The position numbers and the translations under genes are program-made. A stretch of 63,858 bases of DNA, counting the filler, from Bigelowiella natans CCMP2755 (lineage: Eukaryota > Protista > Cercozoa): the NCBI GenBank assembly GCA_000320545.1. It is 10 parts of 10 records of this genome, joined end to end, with 100 filler letters (N's around TTAATTAATTAA, not from the genome) between each part and the next. Parts side by side here need not be neighbours in the genome. Positions count along the whole stretch, not along the records: positions 11,215 to 29,918 come from ADNK01002881.1; 9 more parts are not named here. One strand, written 5' to 3'. Below are positions 17,334 through 28,357 of the stretch, one piece after another. A model generated the notes under the pieces. That model was not told where the DNA came from and made no database searches. It was given only the letters and a program-made list of their open reading frames with translations. Positions within the stretch are counted from its first letter, which is position 1. Each line of letters begins with the position of its first letter.

Positions 17334-20300
17334 ATGCAATCATCAAACACTGACACCAGAGGCATGAATGCGGAAAAGTTCTTGAAGGATGTAATGATAA
17401 TCATTTCTCACGCAAATAGCAGGCAGCAGCTAACATCATTAATGTAATTTTCATCTGCTGAACCCAGGCTCTGGACCTTCTCAGAGCTAGCAGACAACCG
17501 TAAGTGGCCACATTTTCGTTTTTCCCATGTTCTGAGAGAATCGAGTGTTGGGTGATAATATATGTAGTGCATTCATTCATTTTCCTTGTTTTCCCCCGTT
17601 GGCAGAGATGCGGAAGTTCAGAAGAATGTGTACCGAAAGTTTGAGACGGTATTAACCCCTGTCTTCCCGTAAGTGTGGGGATAGATTCGTTGATGGTTTG
17701 TGTTCCACATTTTAACAGCTTCGAACGAATTCTGAATTCAATCAATGCCTTGCTTACATCTTCTCAAACCCGAAAGCAATAGATCTCGTTACGAGGCGGC
17801 AGGTATTATGCCATTTATCCATTTGGAAGCCATAAATCCATCAGCTTGAACATTATTTTCTCCGAAAATTCCAAAGGCGGGTATACTTCTGATGCGGAAT
17901 TTGGCCAACGGAAGGGTGTATTCGCAGATGGCAGCCGGGTAGTGCATTCATTTGAGAGGCCCTCTCAAATGAAGGTGAAATGACACTATTCCGCATCACC
18001 TAATGCTCTGTCTGTAACAACCAGGGTGAAGAAACAAGTCAGAGATTCTATTCTCCGCTGCATAGGTAGAGATCGAGCAGTACTTGCAGGAAATCGTGAC
18101 TGTTTTTTACTGTTTGGTCTCACTTTACCACTGCGTGGTTTGAATATGATTAGATGACAAGAATCGGCAAATCAGAATTACCTTTGGCAATATACTTGCG
18201 GTACATTTTGCTGAAACAGTAGACTCGTTGACTGCATTGGAGCACGACTCCTTTGATCCAATCTAGTTGATTCACTGATATTTTATAAAACAAACCTATC
18301 ACCAGACAATAGCAAAGCTCGAAAAGGGCAACGGTCCTTGGCTAGGTTTTTTGGCGAAGAACTTAGCCAACCCGAATCTATTGGTAGGTGTCGGACTGCG
18401 CGTTGAATTTTTTTAGGAGGGGGGGGGGGGGGGGGGTATACTTTTGGTGCCAGTCGTGCAGTACATGGGGCGTTGTGTGCTGTGTATGTTTGCATGGGTT
18501 GAAGATATGCGTTGTGTGAAGTTATGATCTTTCCTTTCAGATTCAAGACAGCACAATGATTGTCGTGGAATCGTTGATGGAAGACTGCGGTAAGAATCGT
18601 CTTCATGGCTTTACTATATAATAACCCTGATACTAGCTTGTATCTGGTGTAAAGCGGGAGAGAGGTTGGGGGGAGTACATTTCTGGAACTAAGTTGTACG
18701 CGTTCGTCTCTATTTTTTAGGAGAGGAGCTGTTGAAGGCCCATCCGCAGGTTCTTTCCTGATGTGTGTGCTTATGAGCGAAAAATAAAATGTAGCAGTAG
18801 ATTCCTGAGATGCAAGGAAGAAGCATCGATGCTTCCTCCCCCTCCCATTACTTTTTGTTCTACAGCTGTGTGAAAGCACAAATCCCATAGAATGCTAAAT
18901 TTGTAGAGGCAGATTTCGGCCATTGTTATAATCCTCTCCCTCTCCCGTTCCCCCTCCTCCCCGTCTTCCTCCCCGCCTTCCTCCTCGCCCTTCTCAGGAG
19001 CTCCAGATGTTGATGCAAAAGGTCGTGGAGAAAATGAAGTCCAATAATGAGGTAATCAAGAACTATCATCATCCTCAAGACGAAACTGTTATCGTTGTAT
19101 ATTATCTTTGCGTTCGTAACATCTCTCATAAACTCGTCCAGGAGATAAGACATATGGCGATTAGTGCTGTCGGCCAAGCAATTGGCCCAGGTTAGTTTCC
19201 CCCCCCCCCCCCCCCTCTTTTTCCCTCTTCAGGGACATTCCAAGAAGTACATTTTTAACGATTTCCTAGTATTGCTTGGTTATCGTCGTTACCAAATAAA
19301 ATTGTCCTTCCCTCCCCCCCCCCCCATCCTCCTTGCCTGTTACACATGTCACAGGAATGCCTAGCCCATTCCAGGGCCTGACAGAACAATACCTCCAAAA
19401 CCTATTTGTGCTTGCCAAAGACTCGAGTCCAAAGGTCGATCAGTTATTTCCTTTCTCGTGTGAAACAACAACAAACACATCGGAGATGACGAGCGAGAAG
19501 AGGCAGCTACCACATATTCTAATACAGGGAGAGGGGGGGGGGAGCACAATGGTGGTTGCCGATGCGTAGAGATGACCGTGGAGGCATGCCATGAGCCAAA
19601 AGTTCATTCGAGTTCTCGCTGTACCTTCGGGATTGCTATTTCAAGATATTTCTGATGCTACTTGCTTAATACCATCTGATCTATGGTGTCTTGTTGCGCG
19701 CAGGTATTGCTACGTGTCGGGTGGGCCTTCATCGCCCTCCAGGAGGCTGGATCTTCGCAACTCAAGATGAGGTTATATTTCATCAAAAACACACACGCAC
19801 ACGCACACAACCCGCCTTTTACCTGTTGGTTGAGGATGCGATTATTTATTTATTATCGCAGGTTCGAAGATTGCATCAAGGTGATGCTGCATTTGGCTTC
19901 CAAGAGCGACGAGAAGGTTTTGCAAATACCTCTGAAACATAAACTAGCGAGATGACAAAATCTTGAATCTATAACGTCCCAATGGAGGCGAAGGCTTTTG
20001 TTATTATCACCTGAACGATGATGATAGCGCAATGCATCACCATCACGAACATCGTCACTGTCTAAGCCCGTCCTTGCAGGTTGTCTTTTGCGCCTTCGAG
20101 TTCTTCCGCTTACTCCTCCAACATGGAAACCTACCGCGCTCAGACTGGTTCGCCACCAGGTCAGTCGCGATACGCATCAATGCACAAAGCACGATCATCG
20201 TTATCATCATCATCATCATCGTCGTCATCATCATCGTCGTCATCATCGTCGCCATCATTACACTATGAAAATCACCCCGTCATGGCCATCGCCACCACCA

Positions 20301-22289
20301 GCCTCCTCGCTCATCCTATCCTCCCCCCTCTCCCTCGCCCGCAGGGAGAAGAGCATGGCCCAAGGAGCTCTAGCGAAGATGCTGGGCCCATACCTGAAAA
20401 ACCTCGTGCCGCTGCTGCTCCGAAGCCTGGTATTCTCCGAGGAGGAGCTTGCCGACCTCGGCGAGGAAAAGGACTCCCACGTCCCCGACACCGCCCAGGA
20501 GGTGGCCCCGCGCCATGCCCGCCAATCCAAAGGCAAGTTCTCCTCCAAAGTCGACGCCGTGAGCCGGGGGGAGGACGGGTGCGAATGGTCCGTCCGCAAA
20601 TCCAGCGCGAACAGCCTTGACAGCCTGGCGATGCTAGTGCAGGGGAAGGACCTGCTACCCATCTTCCTCCCCCTCGTCAACCAGCTGCTCAAGCATAAGC
20701 AATGGCTGAGAAGAGAGAGCGGCGTCCTGGCGCTAGGGGCCGTGGCGGGCGGCTGTGCGAGCGGCATCAAGGAGCACCTTGAGTCGCTATTCGCGCTCCT
20801 CATTAAGGGCAGCAACGACGAGCGGTCCGCCATTCGCCGCATCACCTGCTGGACTCTCAGCCGATATGCCCCCGTCCTCCTGCAGAGCGACGAGGACAAC
20901 AAGTTCCTCCGCCCGCTCGTGAAGACCCTCCTCGAGAAGATGGGGGACTGCAGCAAGAAGGTGCAGAAGGCGGCCTGCAGCGCGATGCTGCGGGTATTCG
21001 AGGAGACGGCGGCGCGGCACGGCGCTAGGAAGGTCGGGCTCTTTCTCGAACCAGTCTTGATGAAGGTTGGCAAGTGCATGGGGTCATACCAGGAGGCCAA
21101 CAGGCACACACTGTACGATCTCATCGGCACCATTGCCCGCACCGCAGGCCCGAAGTTCAGGGAGCAGCATAAGTTCCTGGAGGGGGCTGTCTCCTCCATG
21201 CTGCAGCACTGGTCCAAGATGGAGACGGGCAGCTACGGCCTCTTCCCCCTCCTCGAGAGTCTATCTGCCATCGCCCTGAGCGCCGAGCAGAAGTTCCTCC
21301 CGTACGCGAAGGTCATCTTCCCCCAGTGCCTCAAGCTGATAATGATGAATCTGAAGACCCTGCAGGAGCTGCGGTGGAGACAAAAACAGGCCGAGGCGAA
21401 GCAGCAGCAGAAACGCCAGCAGCAGCGCGATTCGGAGCTGCACTCCGACAGCAGGTTCCAGCGCTTCGAGGGAACAGACTCCGTGGTGTGCTGCATCGAG
21501 CTGGCGGGTTGCATATACCGAGCCCTTGGGAAGGTGGAGACCCACCTCGCAGAGCCGAAGGCCGTCTTCGAGACGCTCATCGCGTGCTGCAGCGACCCGA
21601 ACCCCTTTATCCGGCAGAGCGCCATGGCCTGGATGGGCGACGTCGTGTGCGCCTCGCCGGGCTTCATCGGAGGCTACTTCAGGGACATTGCTAGAGTGAT
21701 CGTGCTCAATCTGGACTCTGCCCACCCCTTCGTGTGCTCCAACGCAGCGTGGGCGCTTGGAGAGGCAGCCATCCGGCTTGGGCCGAGATGCATGGCGCCG
21801 TTCACCGACGCTGCCATGCGAAAGATGATTCCCATCCTGAACAACAGCAGCGACGGCGGCGAGAAGCAATCACAGCTGCAGCGAGACAGCGGCCTCTTCC
21901 ACTCCATTGCCCTCACCATCTCAAGACTGGGGCTTGTGTGCCCTGGGGAGACCGGCAAGCATCTCGAGCACTTTGCGAAGGCGTGGTGCGAGAGCCTCAC
22001 GAAAACGGCGCAAAACGAGCACCCGAGGGAAGTGGAGATGGCCTTCCGGGGGCTGTGCGGTGTCGTTCCGAAGCGCCCGCAAGCAATGCGGAGTGCGCCC
22101 ATCTTTGTTGCCCTCTGCGAGGCGCTGGCCTCCTTCAAGCCGCCCAGCCAAGAGCTGCACAGTATGGTCAAGAGCCTCCTCCACAACTTCCGCGCGATGT
22201 TCGGCAGCCGGTGGGGGGAGTACTTCGGGAAGTGCAGCCCGCAGCTACGGTATCACCTAGCGCGCACCTACGAGCTGCCGGAGAAATAG
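17334..22289 (+). CDS. TNPO1: Transportin (importin-beta2 / karyopherin-beta2) homolog
   Basis: 5' exons splice to 'MQSSNTDTRGMNAEKFLKD|ALDLLRASRQP|DAEVQKNVYRKFET|LRTNSEFNQCLAYIFSNPKAIDLVTRRQ|AGILLMRNL...VKKQVRDSILRCI..DKNRQIRITFGNILA'. The terminal exon 20345-22289 has 'WSVRKSSANSLDSLA', 'WLRRESGVLALGAVAGGC', 'IRRITCWTLSRY', 'KKVQKAACSA', 'IRQSAMAWMGD' and 'VCSNAAWALGE'. Confidence 0.93.
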
Positions 22290-23977
22290 AAGTCCCGTTG
22301 GTCTATTGTAGAGGTGTACATGGCGAAACCAGCCGGTGTCATTAATAATTATTTCTTAAAAGGAAATGGTAGTCGCAGCACCTGCAGCAGCAGCAGCAGT
22401 GATAGAAGCAGCAGTTGTAGTAGTTGTAGTAGTTGTAGTAGTAATAGTAGTAGTAGTAGTAGTTGTTGCATTAATAGAATACGAGCAGCTGATTCTCAAA
22501 GGTGGACGGATTGGCCTTCTCAGAAGTTCAGATACACCATCATCATTATCATCATTATCATCATTATCATCACCATAAAGTTAGCTTTCTCGTGCGTCAG
22601 TTAGGACCACGCCCTTTTTACATTTGATTAGAATTATACGAGCCTCCCCCCTGTCCAAGCATATGTTGATGTTTCGGGAAACAGTTTCAGAAACGCAGAC
22701 ATGCATCTTGCTAGCACCTTGTAGCTCGAGGTAAGCAAAGGCAGCATGGCGTCCACATCGGATTCCCAAAAAAAAAATATTATAAACATATATATTGAAA
22801 GTTGCTAATCCCATTGCGTCTAGACTTGGGACTTTGGCACTGGATTAGCATGTTTTATTAATGAACGTTACATATGAAAAGAATTCAAGAACGTTGAATC
22901 GATACTTTTGAGAAGAAAAAACTTATCTTGGCGTGGATTGCACATCTAAAACATGTCCTAGTTGGCTGTCTTGCTGCGCCCGCACGCACATGCTAGTACA
23001 TGTATCAAGACAATGCATGCCAATCTAGTAGCAATGCCAACTAGCCAACCCCAGAACTTCGCCAGTCTTGTTCTTCCTCAAAGCTAGAAAGCGCTCACGC
23101 TAATGAACGGTGGTTGATGACACTAACTAGCTAAGCTAATTACAGTGCATGTCAGATGTAATAAAATTACAAAGTGTACGCGATAATTGTATAATTGCAT
23201 TATCGCAACTCATACATCATCCTTGCTAGACATCGCTTATCAACATGATACTTTGCATTGTAGCACACGCTAGCACATGTAGCCACCATGCAGCACGCAG
23301 CAATAAGCTAGCTAGCTACTAGCATGCATGCATGTGTTCTTGACATTTCAATTATTTGCGTACGACTAGTTACGTCTAGACATTCCAATGGTGACATCAA
23401 AGTACGTGCATGTCTAGACATGTTATTTATTCTTGCAAATCTACACATCTAGACACCCGAACCGGAATGAGGCTCACGCGCACACACATCTAGACATGAT
23501 ACTAGCATCGATTCTTTCTGGTGTCACACATTTGGCATGTTCATTTGCTCAACAAACGCATGTTCACTGCATTACATTTCGTCAAAAGCATGGTCAAGAC
23601 GGCTGCATTACAATTGTTGCTATACATGATCATGTATACTTTGCAATTCATTTGCTAGTTTGTCTTCATGCTAGCCTGCACGTACATGCGTGTTATTGCG
23701 TAGCAAGCATCATATTTCAGACGCATTGTGCTCGTCGACATCCATCCTGCAAACAAGGCCACATGCTGGCAATGATGAGCTGCGAATCGGAAGATGCGTT
23801 TGTTGGTAGCATGTGCTGCGTGCAACTTTATCTGCGTTCAAATGCATGGAAATGGCCCCGTGCAAGCGACTACACTTGCCTTGACCACGAGCTTCATTGA
23901 ATGAACATGATCCTAGTGGATTCGGAGAGAGGATAAAGCGATGGATGAATGAATTCTCTGGGAGAAATGAGTTCTAT

Positions 23978-26278
23978 TCATTGAGTTATTTTAACGAATT
24001 CCCATTCCACATCAACAAAATCTTCGTTAGATGACGTTGATTTCAAATGGTTTACCCAATTCGTATCACTGCCCGAGTATTTCTTAATGGGCGACCATGA
24101 GTTGCTACAAATCATCTTGCCATCGGATGACAATCTTAGTTCATCTGGTTCACTAACCATGATGCAGTAGTTGGTCATTCTGGACATAGAAACCCAGTTT
24201 TTGCTTTGCCTAAATCCCCACAAAGCTTCAAGCTTAAATCTGTTGTCTTCAAGCCCATCCTTGTCCTTATGAATGCGGAACACCAAAGTAGACATATTCA
24301 ATGGAGCTACAGTCACGTAATGAGTTCCGGAAACGCTTTGTGTTATGACCATATATTCATTAGAGCCTCTTGCTTTCATGTAGAAAAGATCTTCATCACT
24401 TGGAATACTGTCCCCTCCACAGAGCTTTACCCGTTCTTCCACCATTGTGCGTGTCGGTTCACCACCGGTTTCCCGACCCATTCCTTTCCCATCACCCTTG
24501 ATTCTCCGAAGATGAGCACGCAAATTCGCTTGCATTTCAATCGCCTGATCTTGGAGAGGAGTCCTGTTCATGACGCTGTCATATATGGCGTTAATCTGCA
24601 CTGCAATTTCGACAGATGCTCCAATTATCGCGAAAGTCCTCATTAGCATTAGTGCTGGCGCACCAGTTTCAGTAGCAGCAATTCCTCCAGAGGTAGCGCC
24701 ACTGGACGCCGATGACGATCCTCCGCTGGATGCTGTACTCGCACTGCCAATCGTTGCGGCAGAAGTACTGCCGCCGCTTGATGCTGCGGAAACCCCGCCA
24801 CTCACCGATCTTCTTGCAGCACAACCGGCGATATACTTCACCACGCCGATAAAGTCCTTCGCGGTTGAGCCAACGTTACAAACAGCATTGACTTCTATGA
24901 TCGCGCTCTGCATATGCTGCCGAGACTCAAAGCAGGATTTGATACACAGGAATTTCACATTCATTTCCTCGAGGTACTCCTCAAATTGACGAAGCACTTC
25001 TGCCAACTCATCTTGTTTCAAACACGTCGCACGGCTATCGCCTACAGTATTTGCTGTCGATCCAATACCCATCCCAAGGAGGGTAAATAAGCCAGCAGGC
25101 ATAGTGACTGGAATTGCCGTCAGGACGATCCCAGTGATAGCTGCGACCATTATGGTACCTCGAGCAGCTCCAACACCCTGCTTCTGAGTTACGAGACCTT
25201 CTCTAAAGGATGACAGCCATTGGTCAAGCTCCTCCAAAAAAGTGATTGCCTCCTCGCTTGCCTTACGGACTTGAGTTTCAAGCTGAGTCTTATTGAGTCC
25301 GTTGTAATTTTGAAAGAAGCGAGCTACAATTTCTTCATGTGGCGACCGATCCGACGATACTTCCTCGAAAATAACATCTTCATACTCCTCTCCGCTAGTG
25401 CAGTAAATGCGATTACGGTAGTATCCAGCAGTCGTTACCTTCGCAAAATAACATCCGGAACTTGAATTGTACAATTTCCCGGAAGGTTTATGTTCTAAAC
25501 GCATTGAGTAGTTATGGTCGCAATAAATACCGACACGGCTCTGCCCCCCTACCCGGCCCACCCATTTGTAGCCCCCCCACCCCTCTTTAAGGCGCTTAGC
25601 TGTTTCTAGCAGAAATGATGTCCCTTCTATAGATGCTTTCCGAAATAGCATCGTGCTTTCCTCTCGGTATCTCCCAAGCTGCAGATAACCCCAGCCAGTT
25701 TGCTTCAGATATAATCCAGATTTTTTCTCCCTCAAATAGAACGTCGGATCTTGGATGGGCAACGTCTTTTCGAATAGCACCACCTTGTAACCAGAGCGAG
25801 ATGCACGAGTGCTGAAGATTTGGTTGTAGTAGCGGCCCTGCTTCGTGAATTTGGCAAGGTCACACGAACACGATACGTCATGCAGTCTGCCATCATTTCG
25901 TAATTCAAGCCGTATTGCATAATTGAAATCGGAGAATATCCCTACATATGTGCCACCGTTATGTCGGCCAATCCACTTTTTTGCTATGAACCCTGGTATA
26001 GCTTTGTTTACCTCTAAAACGAAGCTTTTGCTCCCATCACTCCCATCACTGCCCCCCGATATTCTTAGGATAAGAGTGTTTGTTTTAGAAAACTCCCCGA
26101 GGTGGAGATACCCCCCTTCGCAATTAAGATATAATTTTGAACTCTTTTCTCTCAGATGGAACAGCTGCGACGCCTCGACGTCCTTCGCTTCCTGCTGTTT
26201 TCTATCGTCCTTGGCGACGACACATTTTCTGTCATCACAGAGCAACTCTCCCCTTTCATCCATGCCAATCTTATCCAT
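23978..26278 (-). CDS. Intronless 766-aa protein: two N-terminal and one C-terminal ~130-aa beta-rich repeat domains around an apolipoprotein-L-like helical/hydrophobic-hairpin core
   Basis: Uninterrupted 2.3-kb ORF with an in-frame stop just upstream of the ATG. Internal repeats start 'FHLREKSSKLYL', 'FYLREKKSGLYL' and 'FYMKARGSNEYM'. Hydrophobic segment 'GTIMVAAITGIVLTAIPVTMPAGLFTLLGMGIGSTA'. The CDS is secure; the function is inferred. Confidence 0.8.
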   Translation of the reverse strand: MDKIGMDERGELLCDDRKCVVAKDDRKQQEAKDVEASQLFHLREKSSKLYLNCEGGYLHLGEFSKTNTLILRISGGSDGSDGSKSFVLEVNKAIPGFIAKKWIGRHNGGTYVGIFSDFNYAIRLELRNDGRLHDVSCSCDLAKFTKQGRYYNQIFSTRASRSGYKVVLFEKTLPIQDPTFYLREKKSGLYLKQTGWGYLQLGRYREESTMLFRKASIEGTSFLLETAKRLKEGWGGYKWVGRVGGQSRVGIYCDHNYSMRLEHKPSGKLYNSSSGCYFAKVTTAGYYRNRIYCTSGEEYEDVIFEEVSSDRSPHEEIVARFFQNYNGLNKTQLETQVRKASEEAITFLEELDQWLSSFREGLVTQKQGVGAARGTIMVAAITGIVLTAIPVTMPAGLFTLLGMGIGSTANTVGDSRATCLKQDELAEVLRQFEEYLEEMNVKFLCIKSCFESRQHMQSAIIEVNAVCNVGSTAKDFIGVVKYIAGCAARRSVSGGVSAASSGGSTSAATIGSASTASSGGSSSASSGATSGGIAATETGAPALMLMRTFAIIGASVEIAVQINAIYDSVMNRTPLQDQAIEMQANLRAHLRRIKGDGKGMGRETGGEPTRTMVEERVKLCGGDSIPSDEDLFYMKARGSNEYMVITQSVSGTHYVTVAPLNMSTLVFRIHKDKDGLEDNRFKLEALWGFRQSKNWVSMSRMTNYCIMVSEPDELRLSSDGKMICSNSWSPIKKYSGSDTNWVNHLKSTSSNEDFVDVEWEFVKITQ

Positions 26279-27087
26279 GACAACACAGCAAGTTTACGAG
26301 CAAGCTATAACACCAAGTGCAGAGGTACGTGCCGCGTATGGAGTTAAGGCGTTAAGGTCAACGTCGAAGAATGGGTTGGAGATATAGGTATGCGGCTCAG
26401 AAAGAACCGGGCGTCAATTCTGAATCTGGCTTCAATTCCACAGCTTGAAAATGAGACAAATGGCCTGCATTCATTCATCATGCATGATGAGGAAACGTAA
26501 CCGTAGAAAATGCGAAAGCGCTGCGGAAAACCCAGCGGGATTACTCATGAACACAGAAAACTAGGGTGCGACAAGGCGTGAGAAACCCAAAATACGAGGG
26601 ACACTGAGCTCGGATACGTTCCAATCTTTTGGTTTAGTTCCGCAACACATGGACGTTCCCTCAATTATTTTCTGGCGAATTTACCACGATTTCCTTTCAA
26701 CAACATCTACTGCGGAGATGTTCATACCACAGAAAGCGGTGTACCCAACTGGAAGGAGCACAAAAAGGACCAATTCTCTTGGATGGTATTTTAGAAACGC
26801 TTTGCTTGCGCTTTTTCTTTTATTAGGATGCGCAATAGGAATTAAATGAATGTATTTCGAGTCAGCGACAATGAATTTTCGTTGTCGTCTAATTTCCCAT
26901 AAATTTGGCGCTTCTGTAATTTTTCCGAAGTAGTCGCCCCCCCCTTTTGATCATTTTTACCGACTCTATTTTCCTTCCAACTTTTGATCTTCTAGAAAGA
27001 AGGGTGTCGAGAGTCGGAGTCACTACGTGTTGCAACGCCGGTCTATCCAAAATATTACCCACTAAGCTAATCCAACATAGAGGTCTC

Positions 27088-28357
27088 ATGTCCCAAGCAG
27101 CCAAAATTAGGGATGAAGCTTCACAGAATAATTCCGATGAAGCTAAATTGCTGAGTATTCTCGAAAGAGATCTAGGAATAGTTCATATGCTCCACCCCAG
27201 CATACTGGAGCTTGCCCGACCGCAGAAATGGGAGACAGTGGCCGAACTCAAGAGTGGGAGAACTCACTTCGCCGTGGCAGTTAGCCCTGACGGGAGCAAA
27301 ATATTTGCTGCTGGTGGTGCCGATCACTCTGGACTCCCTTCGGACACAGTCGAGTACTATAACTTTGCCACTGAATCATGGGAAGAACTTCCACAAAAGA
27401 TGCACTGCAAGCGGAGGGGCTTAGGGGTTACCATGAGCCCGGACGGCAAGAAACTTTATGCAGTAGGCGGTGATGGCCTCGCTTCCTGTGAATGCTATGA
27501 TTTCACGACGTCCCGTTGGGAGGAATTGCCCGCAATGGGCCGGAAAAGAGCGTCGGCTGGAGTCGCAATGAGCCCAGATGGGCGGAGAATGTTCGCGGTT
27601 GGAGGATCCCTCATAGGCAGGGAAATCGGGTATCAGCAGTGGAATACTGTCGAATGCTTCGACTTTGAAGAGGGGAAATGGAGGGATTTGCCACAGATGT
27701 CTTCTAGACGAGAGAGTCCTATAGTGTCAATCTGTCCTGGAGGGAGAAGGCTTGCCGTCTGCGGACAAGAGAGCTCGGATTCCGAGTACGACACAATAGA
27801 ATGCTTCGATTTAGAGGAAAGGTGATACTATTATACGTAAACAAAAACACAGAATCTAGATATACCCCCACTTGTCGACTGAGCCCGATAACTAAATCTT
27901 ATTCTTACCTTCTTTCTCTAGGAGTTGGATAACAGTACCAAAGATGACACTCCCTCGCAAATCTATAGGCTTCGCTATGAGCCCGGACGGGAAAAGGCTT
28001 TACGCAGTTGGCGGACACCGTCCAAATGGCGACTGTGATGTCACGTTATTCGAGTTCTTCGACTTCGACACGTGGGAATGGAAAGAGCTGCGGCCCTTGA
28101 AAACTACTATTGCAGAACCCAAAGTCACGATCAGCCCAGACTCTACTAAGCTTTACGTAATGGGTAAAACGTTGCGACAGGGGCACGTGATTGCATCCTA
28201 CGATTTCGAAAAAGCGGAGTGGGGTGAGATTCCTCGGACGAACAGCAAAGAATGGAAAGAATTTATCATGAGCCCGGACGGGAAAACGTTGTGCTCCCTC
28301 GACACCACGAGTCACTATGATGTAGGAAAATTAGAAGCCATCAGAGTATCATTGTAG
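27088..28357 (+). CDS. Kelch-repeat beta-propeller protein (2 exons; intron 27822-27921)
   Basis: Repeated blades 'V(A/T)(V/M)SPDG(S/K/R)(K/R)(I/L/M)(F/Y)A(A/V)GG...VE(Y/C)(Y/F)DF....WEELP.M..(K/R)R'. A 100-nt GT-AG intron joins ORFs 26947-27825 and 27944-28357 in frame (LEER|SWITVPKM). Confidence 0.92.

Follow-up and report, generated by a model that had tools for sequence, protein, structure and literature searches.

What protein does the long intron-free reading frame of Bigelowiella natans described here encode, and is its helical core related to the apolipoproteins L (ApoL; APOL for the individual animal proteins)? The frame, of 766 amino acids (aa) with an ATG start, lies on the minus strand at 23978..26278 of a 63,858-nucleotide stretch joined from ten parts of the nuclear genome assembly of strain CCMP2755 (GCA_000320545.1); this whole stretch is called the window below, and coordinates are counted along it. 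Apolipoproteins L have been studied almost solely in mammals, in connection with trypanosome lysis, the killing of cytosolic bacteria and kidney disease. The first-pass annotation of the window had proposed that the B. natans protein is a pore-forming effector in which an ApoL-like core is flanked by three beta-trefoil-like domains. We found that the architecture, trefoils around a helical module, is well supported, and that an ApoL-like character of the central region is supported by three independent, individually weak lines: a link to a family of protist proteins, language-model neighbours and the order of the structural elements. For a cytosolic protein in which three trefoils flank a remote relative or look-alike of the ApoL domain and target its insertion into membranes, we regard the balance of probability as even.

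Three beta-trefoil units flank a helical hairpin module

The elements of the protein, from the N- to the C-terminus and all encoded on the minus strand, are the following; helix boundaries marked as modelled come from AlphaFold2 (AF2), for which local confidence is given as the predicted local distance difference test (pLDDT).

26174..26278, minus: charged N-terminal leader, aa 1-35 (D 20%, K 14%, E 11%), hydrophobic stretch absent
25763..26173, minus: beta-trefoil unit U1, aa 36-172, net charge +8 (homology to U2, alignment A3; fold inferred from the U2 model)
25349..25762, minus: beta-trefoil unit U2, aa 173-310, net charge +4
25178..25348, minus: two amphipathic helices ahead of the hairpin, aa 311-367, modelled at 313-325 and 330-366 (AF2, pLDDT 70-84)
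25043..25177, minus: Gly/Ala/Thr/Pro-rich hydrophobic helical hairpin, aa 368-412 (hydropathy; AF2 helices 373-388 and 390-404)
24809..25042, minus: long amphipathic helices, aa 413-490, modelled at 414-468 and 473-493, in the position of the APOL membrane-addressing domain (MAD) (AF2)
24659..24808, minus: disordered Ser/Gly/Ala/Thr linker, aa 491-540 (composition; pLDDT < 50)
24485..24658, minus: second apolar helix, aa 540-571, then basic amphipathic helix, aa 573-598 (hydropathy, AF2, sequence)
23981..24415, minus: divergent beta-trefoil unit U3, aa 622-766 (match to the U1/U2 profile, alignment A3)

The three homologous units of about 130 aa that had been described at the outset, together with their shared motifs, were recovered by pairwise and profile comparison. 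U1 (38-170) and U2 (177-306) are 41% identical across 133 aa (E 2e-28), and U3 is 25% identical to U1 (E 7e-4) and 28% identical to U2 (E 0.02). A profile built from U1 and U2 aligned with the full length of U3 (626-760) and scored 15.0 bits (E 1e-6), a value that none of 3000 shuffled sequences reached (maximum 9.3). The motifs noted earlier correspond to the invariant columns of the three-unit alignment A3 (F9, S16, Y19, F51-x-L53-E54, W68, G96, V131 and E134), and a terminal V-x-W-E motif is common to all three repeats. On these alignments, U1, U2 and U3 are homologous repeats.

The fold of the repeats was assessed by modelling. When the predicted model of U2 (pLDDT 56, predicted template modelling score 0.57) was submitted to Foldseek, essentially all of the top 50 matches were trefoils, with probabilities up to 1.0, TM-scores of 0.45-0.51 and E values of at least 0.015. 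In the ESM model of the whole protein in the Atlas, residues 39-316 align to fascin-type double trefoils, and the model also aligns to ricin-B trefoil proteins. At the level of these models U1 to U3 have a beta-trefoil fold, in line with the earlier proposal; confidence is modest in both AF2 models, that of U2 and that of the central region, and the alignments behind them are very shallow. The threefold internal symmetry of trefoils was undetectable in the units at the sequence level, and the units match neither the ricin-B lectin (PF00652/PF14200) nor the Fascin (PF06268) profile and do not display the (QxW)3 signature. Pfam searches with six separate pieces of the protein gave noise only (E >= 0.07), with no unit matched, as did a search of the PDB sequences with a three-unit trefoil profile. 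The trefoils returned by Foldseek are often joined to membrane-damaging modules, as in Cry78Aa, Vibrio cytolysins and mosquitocidal toxins.

Between U2 and U3, hydropathy, composition and the AF2 model agree on the succession that had been read from the sequence: amphipathic helix, hairpin, further helices, linker, apolar helix and zipper-like helix. The hydropathy profile has two peaks, 368-406 and 540-566. AF2 models residues 310-610 as entirely helical, with a pLDDT of 63.5 overall and of 70-84 in the helices around the hairpin. The hairpin segment consists of 17% Gly, 15% Ala and 15% Thr, with two Pro and no acidic residue, and turns at P390-V-T-M-P-A-G396, which resembles the A-P-F-T-E-G-G of the APOL1 hairpin turn. 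The hydrophobic moment reaches its maximum just beyond, at aa 420-443. Ser accounts for 34% of the linker (491-540), Gly and Ala for 22% each and Thr for 12%; the apolar helix that follows holds E557 and D567, and the basic helix 573-598 carries roughly heptad-spaced A/M/L/L/I. At model level, then, a flexible hydrophobic helical hairpin architecture is present.

A Foldseek search with the central model (pdb, VIA-wide) gave nothing above the helical background. Thus, of what the first-pass annotation expected from modelling of this region, the all-helical structure with a hairpin appeared in the AF2 model, and a match to an ApoL- or colicin-like fold did not, the fold search being uninformative. 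The fold labels 'colicin/Bcl-2-like' and 'ClyA-like' are not assertable for the same reason.

The hairpin module is shared with unannotated protist proteins

When 1.84 billion representatives were searched exhaustively with phmmer, the protein itself and P0002 were the only matches (E 3.6e-4, residues 351-434, in four matched stretches). With a word-indexed search of 5.8e9 clusters, the whole protein found only itself and residues 310-600 found nothing at E <= 10; the whole protein had no useful match in Pfam, NCBIfam or the PDB sequences either, and no orthologue was found in other chlorarachniophyte transcriptomes within the collections searched. P0002 comes from Logan ERR13034260 (L005:87-2498). 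Together with P0005, from JGI 3300017296 (L006:2-2248), and with P0003 and P0004, which are EukProt Trinity transcript models, it forms a set of unannotated proteins of 750-914 aa, each with three to four tandem helix-hairpin-helix modules.

An alignment of eight units shows G, L, P, T, A and G to be invariant about the hairpin turn (G..L...P.T..AG). The flanking helices align as well, residues 311-367 of the B. natans protein pairing with the helix that precedes the hairpin in the P0002-family units. A 12-unit profile from which the B. natans protein was excluded scored 31.7 bits on that protein. The excised B. natans segment scored 37.8 bits, compared with a mean of 1.3 (standard deviation 2.9, maximum 16.3) for block-wise, composition-preserving shuffles (n=3000) and 8.6 for the reversed sequence. 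Since no such shuffle exceeded 16.3 bits, the profile comparison indicates that the homology of the hairpin module to the P0002 family is real and is not an effect of composition. No sequence homology was detected past residue ~434.

The likeness concerns the helix-hairpin-helix module, with its invariant G, L, P-x-T and A-G at the turn. In other respects the proteins differ: P0002-P0005 have three to four modules in tandem and no trefoils, whereas the B. natans protein has one module and three trefoils, and identity between the modules is just 14-24%. P0002-P0005 may be 'poly-ApoL' proteins; two of them match Pfam ApoL below threshold.

Is the module an ApoL domain?

In the APOLs, a transmembrane hairpin that forms the membrane-insertion domain is followed by the MAD helix hairpin, a pore-lining hydrophobic helix that includes an acidic residue, and a leucine zipper; most APOLs have no signal peptide, and those with a hairpin free of acidic residues insert at neutral pH (PMC10937811, PMC8358165). 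The B. natans protein resembles them, and especially the cytosolic APOL3/APOL6 type, in being helical and free of a signal peptide, with a flexible hydrophobic hairpin between amphipathic helices and, later, an apolar helix that bears acidic residues and leads into a short, amphipathic, zipper-like one. The flexible hydrophobic transmembrane hairpin of the APOL membrane-insertion domain has, in the model, its counterpart at 368-406, which shares with APOL3-6 the lack of acidic residues. The likeness of helices 414-468 and 473-493 to the APOL MAD hairpin is one of position only, directly after the hairpin, and that of the apolar helix 540-571 and helix 573-598 to the APOL pore-lining helix and zipper (PMC8358165) is one of order.

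Two further lines point the same way. In the protist family, P0003 matched Pfam ApoL (PF05461) at E 0.0056, its residues 456-587 falling on model positions 56-188, and P0005 did so at E 0.021, with residues 261-345 on positions 52-134. The P-x-T of the hairpin turn lies at residue 513 of P0003 and 322 of P0005, and both place the turn at about model position 113 if indels are ignored; this shared register weighs in favour of ApoL, because two chance matches would be unlikely to have it in common. Single units were less informative, two of the eight reaching E 0.03. Among Atlas language-model neighbours, the first for the whole protein was a cnidarian cluster with ApoL and Ricin_B domains (score 0.93, 186 of 256 features shared), and residues 311-600 alone retrieved ApoL clusters at ranks 1-24 of 30 (score 0.90, 178-182 features shared).

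Several observations weigh against an ApoL assignment. PF05461 had no match at E <= 10 in the whole protein or in residues 310-600, 330-480 or 335-461, and the matches of P0003 and P0005 fall below its gathering score of 25.9 bits. The Atlas similarity has no E value; a score of 0.9 arises in 4-10% of shuffled proteins, a rate measured for whole proteins and not for parts of proteins. The four-helix bundle of APOL1/3 (PMC10937811) is absent, only two helices lying between U2 and the hairpin, and the 50-residue disordered linker has no ApoL counterpart. The hairpin arms, of about 16-17 residues each, are borderline for spanning a bilayer, so that a monotopic anchor is possible, and the pLDDT values of both AF2 models (63.5 for the central region, 56 for U2) are modest. 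Of the parallel with ApoL drawn in the first-pass annotation, the order of elements stood and was joined by the P0002-family link and the language-model neighbours; Pfam ApoL, the four-helix bundle and the fold search did not bear it out. Weighing these lines, we consider true ApoL homology of the module likely, if by no means assured.

A different model for the helical part would be an alpha-pore-forming module of the ClyA superfamily (MakB/Hbl/Nhe/Smh-like), in which a helical bundle shields the hydrophobic head hairpin until this swings out into the membrane, possibly once the protein has oligomerised. When the hairpin-module profile (alignment A1) was run against the PDB, its best match was MakB (6w1w_A, E 0.17, profile 15-103 on residues 168-257), and a second MakB chain (6t8d_X, E 5) matched in the same register; both align the hydrophobic head hairpin. 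ClyA-superfamily members (MakB, MakA, SmhB, ClyA) are similarly helical, with a central hydrophobic hairpin between long helices, but they are bacterial, secreted and trefoil-free, and the MakB match is not significant and has no Pfam or fold support: neither HBL nor HlyE was matched in Pfam at E <= 10, and the pore forms of MakA, ClyA and SmhB gave insignificant fold matches only. Moreover, the language-model neighbours are ApoL clusters and not HBL/ClyA, and the ordered helical part, of about 230 residues and interrupted by the linker, is shorter than a ClyA-type tail and head. We consider a ClyA-type module improbable. The MakB match may stem from 'helix, hydrophobic hairpin, helix' being a common solution, and not from ancestry. 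As an observation in its own right, the MakB alignment may indicate that hairpins of the ApoL and ClyA types resemble each other in a general way, or that they are very remotely linked.

The borderline length of the hairpin arms also bears on whether the protein damages membranes at all. It might be a non-lytic membrane protein with a monotopic or hairpin anchor like that of syntaxin 17, the reticulons and APOL3 (membrane dynamics), which holds the three cytosolic trefoils on an organelle; the trefoils would bind the cytoskeleton (in a fascin-like manner), phosphoinositides or glycoconjugates, and the protein would serve in tethering, scaffolding or the fission or fusion of membranes and would not kill. 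Short arms rich in Gly, Ala, Thr and Pro are consistent with such an anchor, as are the basic charges of U1 and U2 (+8 and +4) and the expression of the gene in ordinary cultures (six studies) with no sign of induction, and Pays has proposed membrane dynamics as the basic function of the APOLs (PMC10937811). However, a housekeeping factor of membrane dynamics would not usually be a single-copy orphan with no chlorarachniophyte orthologue in the searched collections; the apolar helix, with its acidic residues, and the amphipathic helix after it parallel the APOL pore-lining region and zipper, and trefoils joined to membrane-damaging modules are common among the fold matches. On this evidence a purely anchoring role, the main rival to our reading, seems rather unlikely to us, if worth keeping in view.

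The gene is transcribed without splicing

The transcript and coding sequence are delimited as follows.

26279..26413, minus: 5' untranslated region, transcript start approximate (X1 and X9 contigs stop at 26410 and 26413)
23978..26278, minus: complete coding sequence, 766 aa plus stop, intron-free (open reading frame list; match to JGI Bigna1 90950; single copy)
23603..23977, minus: 3' untranslated region (X1 contig stops at 23603; raw reads of X22 suggest extension to ~23402)

At least half of the words sampled from the stretch were present in 20 runs from six studies. Contigs from three of these studies cover 23603-25543 and 25591-26410 without a single difference, indel or joint, and none lies on the intergenic segments 23000-23400 and 26484-26885. 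The runs behind these contigs were only guessed to be RNA; three features fit transcriptomes, namely coverage confined to the gene, very unequal depth of adjacent genes (the next gene, which starts at ~26901, has about ten times the depth of the gene studied here) and contig sets that total ~40 Mb where the genome has 91 Mb. In a run that is recorded as RNA-seq (X22, raw reads), 30 reads map to 23402-24339, nearly all in one mate orientation (first mate minus), and this span corresponds, strand-specifically, to the 3' end of a minus-strand gene. The gene is therefore transcribed without splicing, and the possibility that the frame is never expressed, which had been named as fatal to the original proposal, is countered by the contigs of three studies and by strand-specific RNA-seq reads.

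The contigs of all three studies break at 25558-25579, inside a run of G-tracts and with no joint reported. A splice at this position was not accepted: the break sits in the G-tracts without a joint and was taken as a sequencing or assembly artefact, of which the G-tracts at 25545-25590 are probably the cause. On the coding (minus) strand this run reads GGGG-T-GGGGGGG ... GGG-T-GGG-CC-GGG-TA-GGGGGG; it encodes G-W-G-G-Y-K-W-V-G-R-V-G-G and is potentially G-quadruplex-forming.

The open frame extends to 771 aa in all, with an in-frame stop five codons upstream of the ATG. Its product is 99% identical to JGI Bigna1 90950 (= EukProt EP00466_Bigelowiella_natans_P009668) except for the last ~20 aa. 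In the public model the last ~20 codons are spliced out through a GTAAAC donor just after W741 (24055, minus strand). Transcript contigs cross this GTAAAC site unspliced, and the continuous frame keeps the terminal V-x-W-E of the third trefoil; this 3' intron was accordingly ruled out. Because of the read-through and the preserved motif, the intronless 766-aa form is the supported one, and the C-terminus of Bigna1 90950 is probably wrong. The statement that the gene is intronless in an intron-rich genome thus holds, with contigs from three studies collinear and free of joints where B. natans genes have a mean of 8 introns per gene (PMC13746701). It also held that the protein has no signal peptide: by composition and hydropathy, no signal-peptide-like stretch was found at the highly charged N-terminus.

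A single-copy gene in an ordinary neighbourhood

The paralog expansion sought in the first-pass annotation did not materialise. Searches of the B. natans assembly with the whole protein, U1+U2, the central region and the hairpin profile revealed no second copy; besides the gene itself there was one low-complexity match (E 0.37). A genome scan with PF05461 was blank as well, with controls that were uninformative. The gene is single-copy in this assembly. Its G+C content at third codon positions (GC3) is 0.47, near that of the neighbouring Kelch gene (0.49), and its overall GC matches likewise. Neither viral contigs nor metagenome contigs, the latter searched with alignment A4 and with the whole protein, gave a match. 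Since these viral and metagenome scans were blank and GC3 is close to that of the Kelch neighbour, a viral or recent lateral origin is without support.

Copy number and composition also bear on a more sceptical explanation, namely that this is a young lineage-specific gene, arisen by domain duplication or lateral gain, that is transcribed without a selected membrane function and owes its ApoL likeness to convergence in hairpin composition and geometry. Among 1.84e9 representatives and 5.8e9 clusters the gene stands as an orphan, it is intronless where the genome averages 8 introns per gene, and every ApoL line is below threshold or without statistics, all as would be expected of such a gene. 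Against this, similarity to the P0002 family spans the flanking helices and lies far above that of composition-preserving shuffles. The 766-codon frame has stayed open and the three diverged domain copies are still recognisably related, which indicates long-term purifying selection. There is no compositional sign of recent transfer, GC and GC3 being like those of the Kelch neighbour, and the gene is expressed in six studies. We give this explanation little credence, and continue with trefoils that target an ApoL-like module.

The flanking genes are ordinary eukaryotic ones, a Kelch-repeat frame at 26947-27825 (plus strand) and a HEAT-repeat frame at 20088-22289 (plus strand). The Kelch-repeat gene region (26901-27825, plus) has a depth of 165-188, compared with 13-25 for the gene studied here, in two contig sets. 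The HEAT-repeat frame is a second long intron-free reading frame, uninterrupted over 733 aa and with strong HEAT-repeat matches (HEAT_EZ, E 1.5e-24). Its block has 62% GC and a GC3 of 0.79, compared with 42-50% GC and a GC3 of ~0.47-0.49 in the surrounding genes; this composition deviates far more than that of the gene studied here and could reflect lateral origin or local compositional heterogeneity.

Comparison with known systems

A parallel to the combination of domains is the cnidarian cluster of the ESM Atlas, which has 59 members and a 414-aa representative, with PF05461 in 90% and PF00652 (Ricin_B_lectin) in 59%. It likewise combines an ApoL-type module and beta-trefoil lectin domains in one polypeptide. 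It differs in being about half as long and in having domains that Pfam recognises, whereas none is recognised in the B. natans protein, and neither phmmer nor the word-indexed search detected sequence similarity between the two. In the literature searched we found no published pairing of ApoL with a beta-trefoil or ricin domain, the cnidarian cluster included. The claim that the architecture is undescribed thus holds for that literature, while the sequence databases do contain the cnidarian ApoL and ricin-B cluster. New features are the rhizarian host, a divergence so extreme that Pfam recognises no domain, the 2 + 1 arrangement of trefoils around the module and the link to an unannotated tandem-hairpin protist family.

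From the APOLs themselves the protein differs in having no direct Pfam match, two pre-hairpin helices in place of a four-helix bundle, a domain split by the 50-residue Ser/Gly/Ala/Thr linker and three beta-trefoils; it belongs to a rhizarian alga, whereas the APOLs are animal proteins. Toxins that join trefoils to pore formers (Cry78Aa/Tpp, Vibrio cytolysins with lectin domains, the mosquitocidal holotoxin) are secreted and have beta-sheet pore parts of aerolysin-like or haemolysin type, in contrast to the alpha-helical membrane module and the lack of a signal peptide in the B. natans protein.

Proposed mechanism and significance

From the architecture and these parallels we infer ligand binding, membrane insertion and a lytic or pore activity. 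The trefoils would bind a ligand on the target surface, most likely a glycan by analogy with trefoil lectins on pore-forming modules, and binding would concentrate the protein at the target membrane. The uncharged hairpin could then insert at neutral pH, as reported for APOL3-6 with acid-free hairpins, and the C-terminal apolar helix might help to permeabilise or remodel the membrane. The likely role of the protein would be in regulated cell death or in the cell-autonomous defence against microbes or viruses, whether these are ingested or invade.

A bolder form of this proposal is that ApoL-type effectors are not an animal invention, and that B. natans has a true but very divergent homologue, aimed by three lectin-like trefoils, that works within the cytosol as a cell-autonomous antimicrobial or cell-death effector. 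We hold this to be a real, if somewhat doubtful, possibility. If it were true, P0002-P0005 would represent a second protist branch with tandem ApoL hairpin modules, the origin of the ApoL module would be pushed back to early eukaryotes, and the combination of lectin and ApoL would have arisen or been retained in protists and cnidarians alike. If the ApoL likeness were convergent, the protein would be an orphan helical membrane protein of unusual architecture and of narrower interest.

For B. natans, a model alga with a sequenced genome, the gene is a candidate cell-autonomous immune effector in a field where very few have been characterised, and the tandem-hairpin protist family may merit a description of its own. 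The data hint that ApoL-like effectors exist outside animals. Should our reading be true, the B. natans protein would be a natural example of an ApoL-like module targeted by probable ligand-binding trefoils, and a protist ApoL-like protein would serve as an outgroup for the ancestral function of the module, be it lysis or membrane dynamics.

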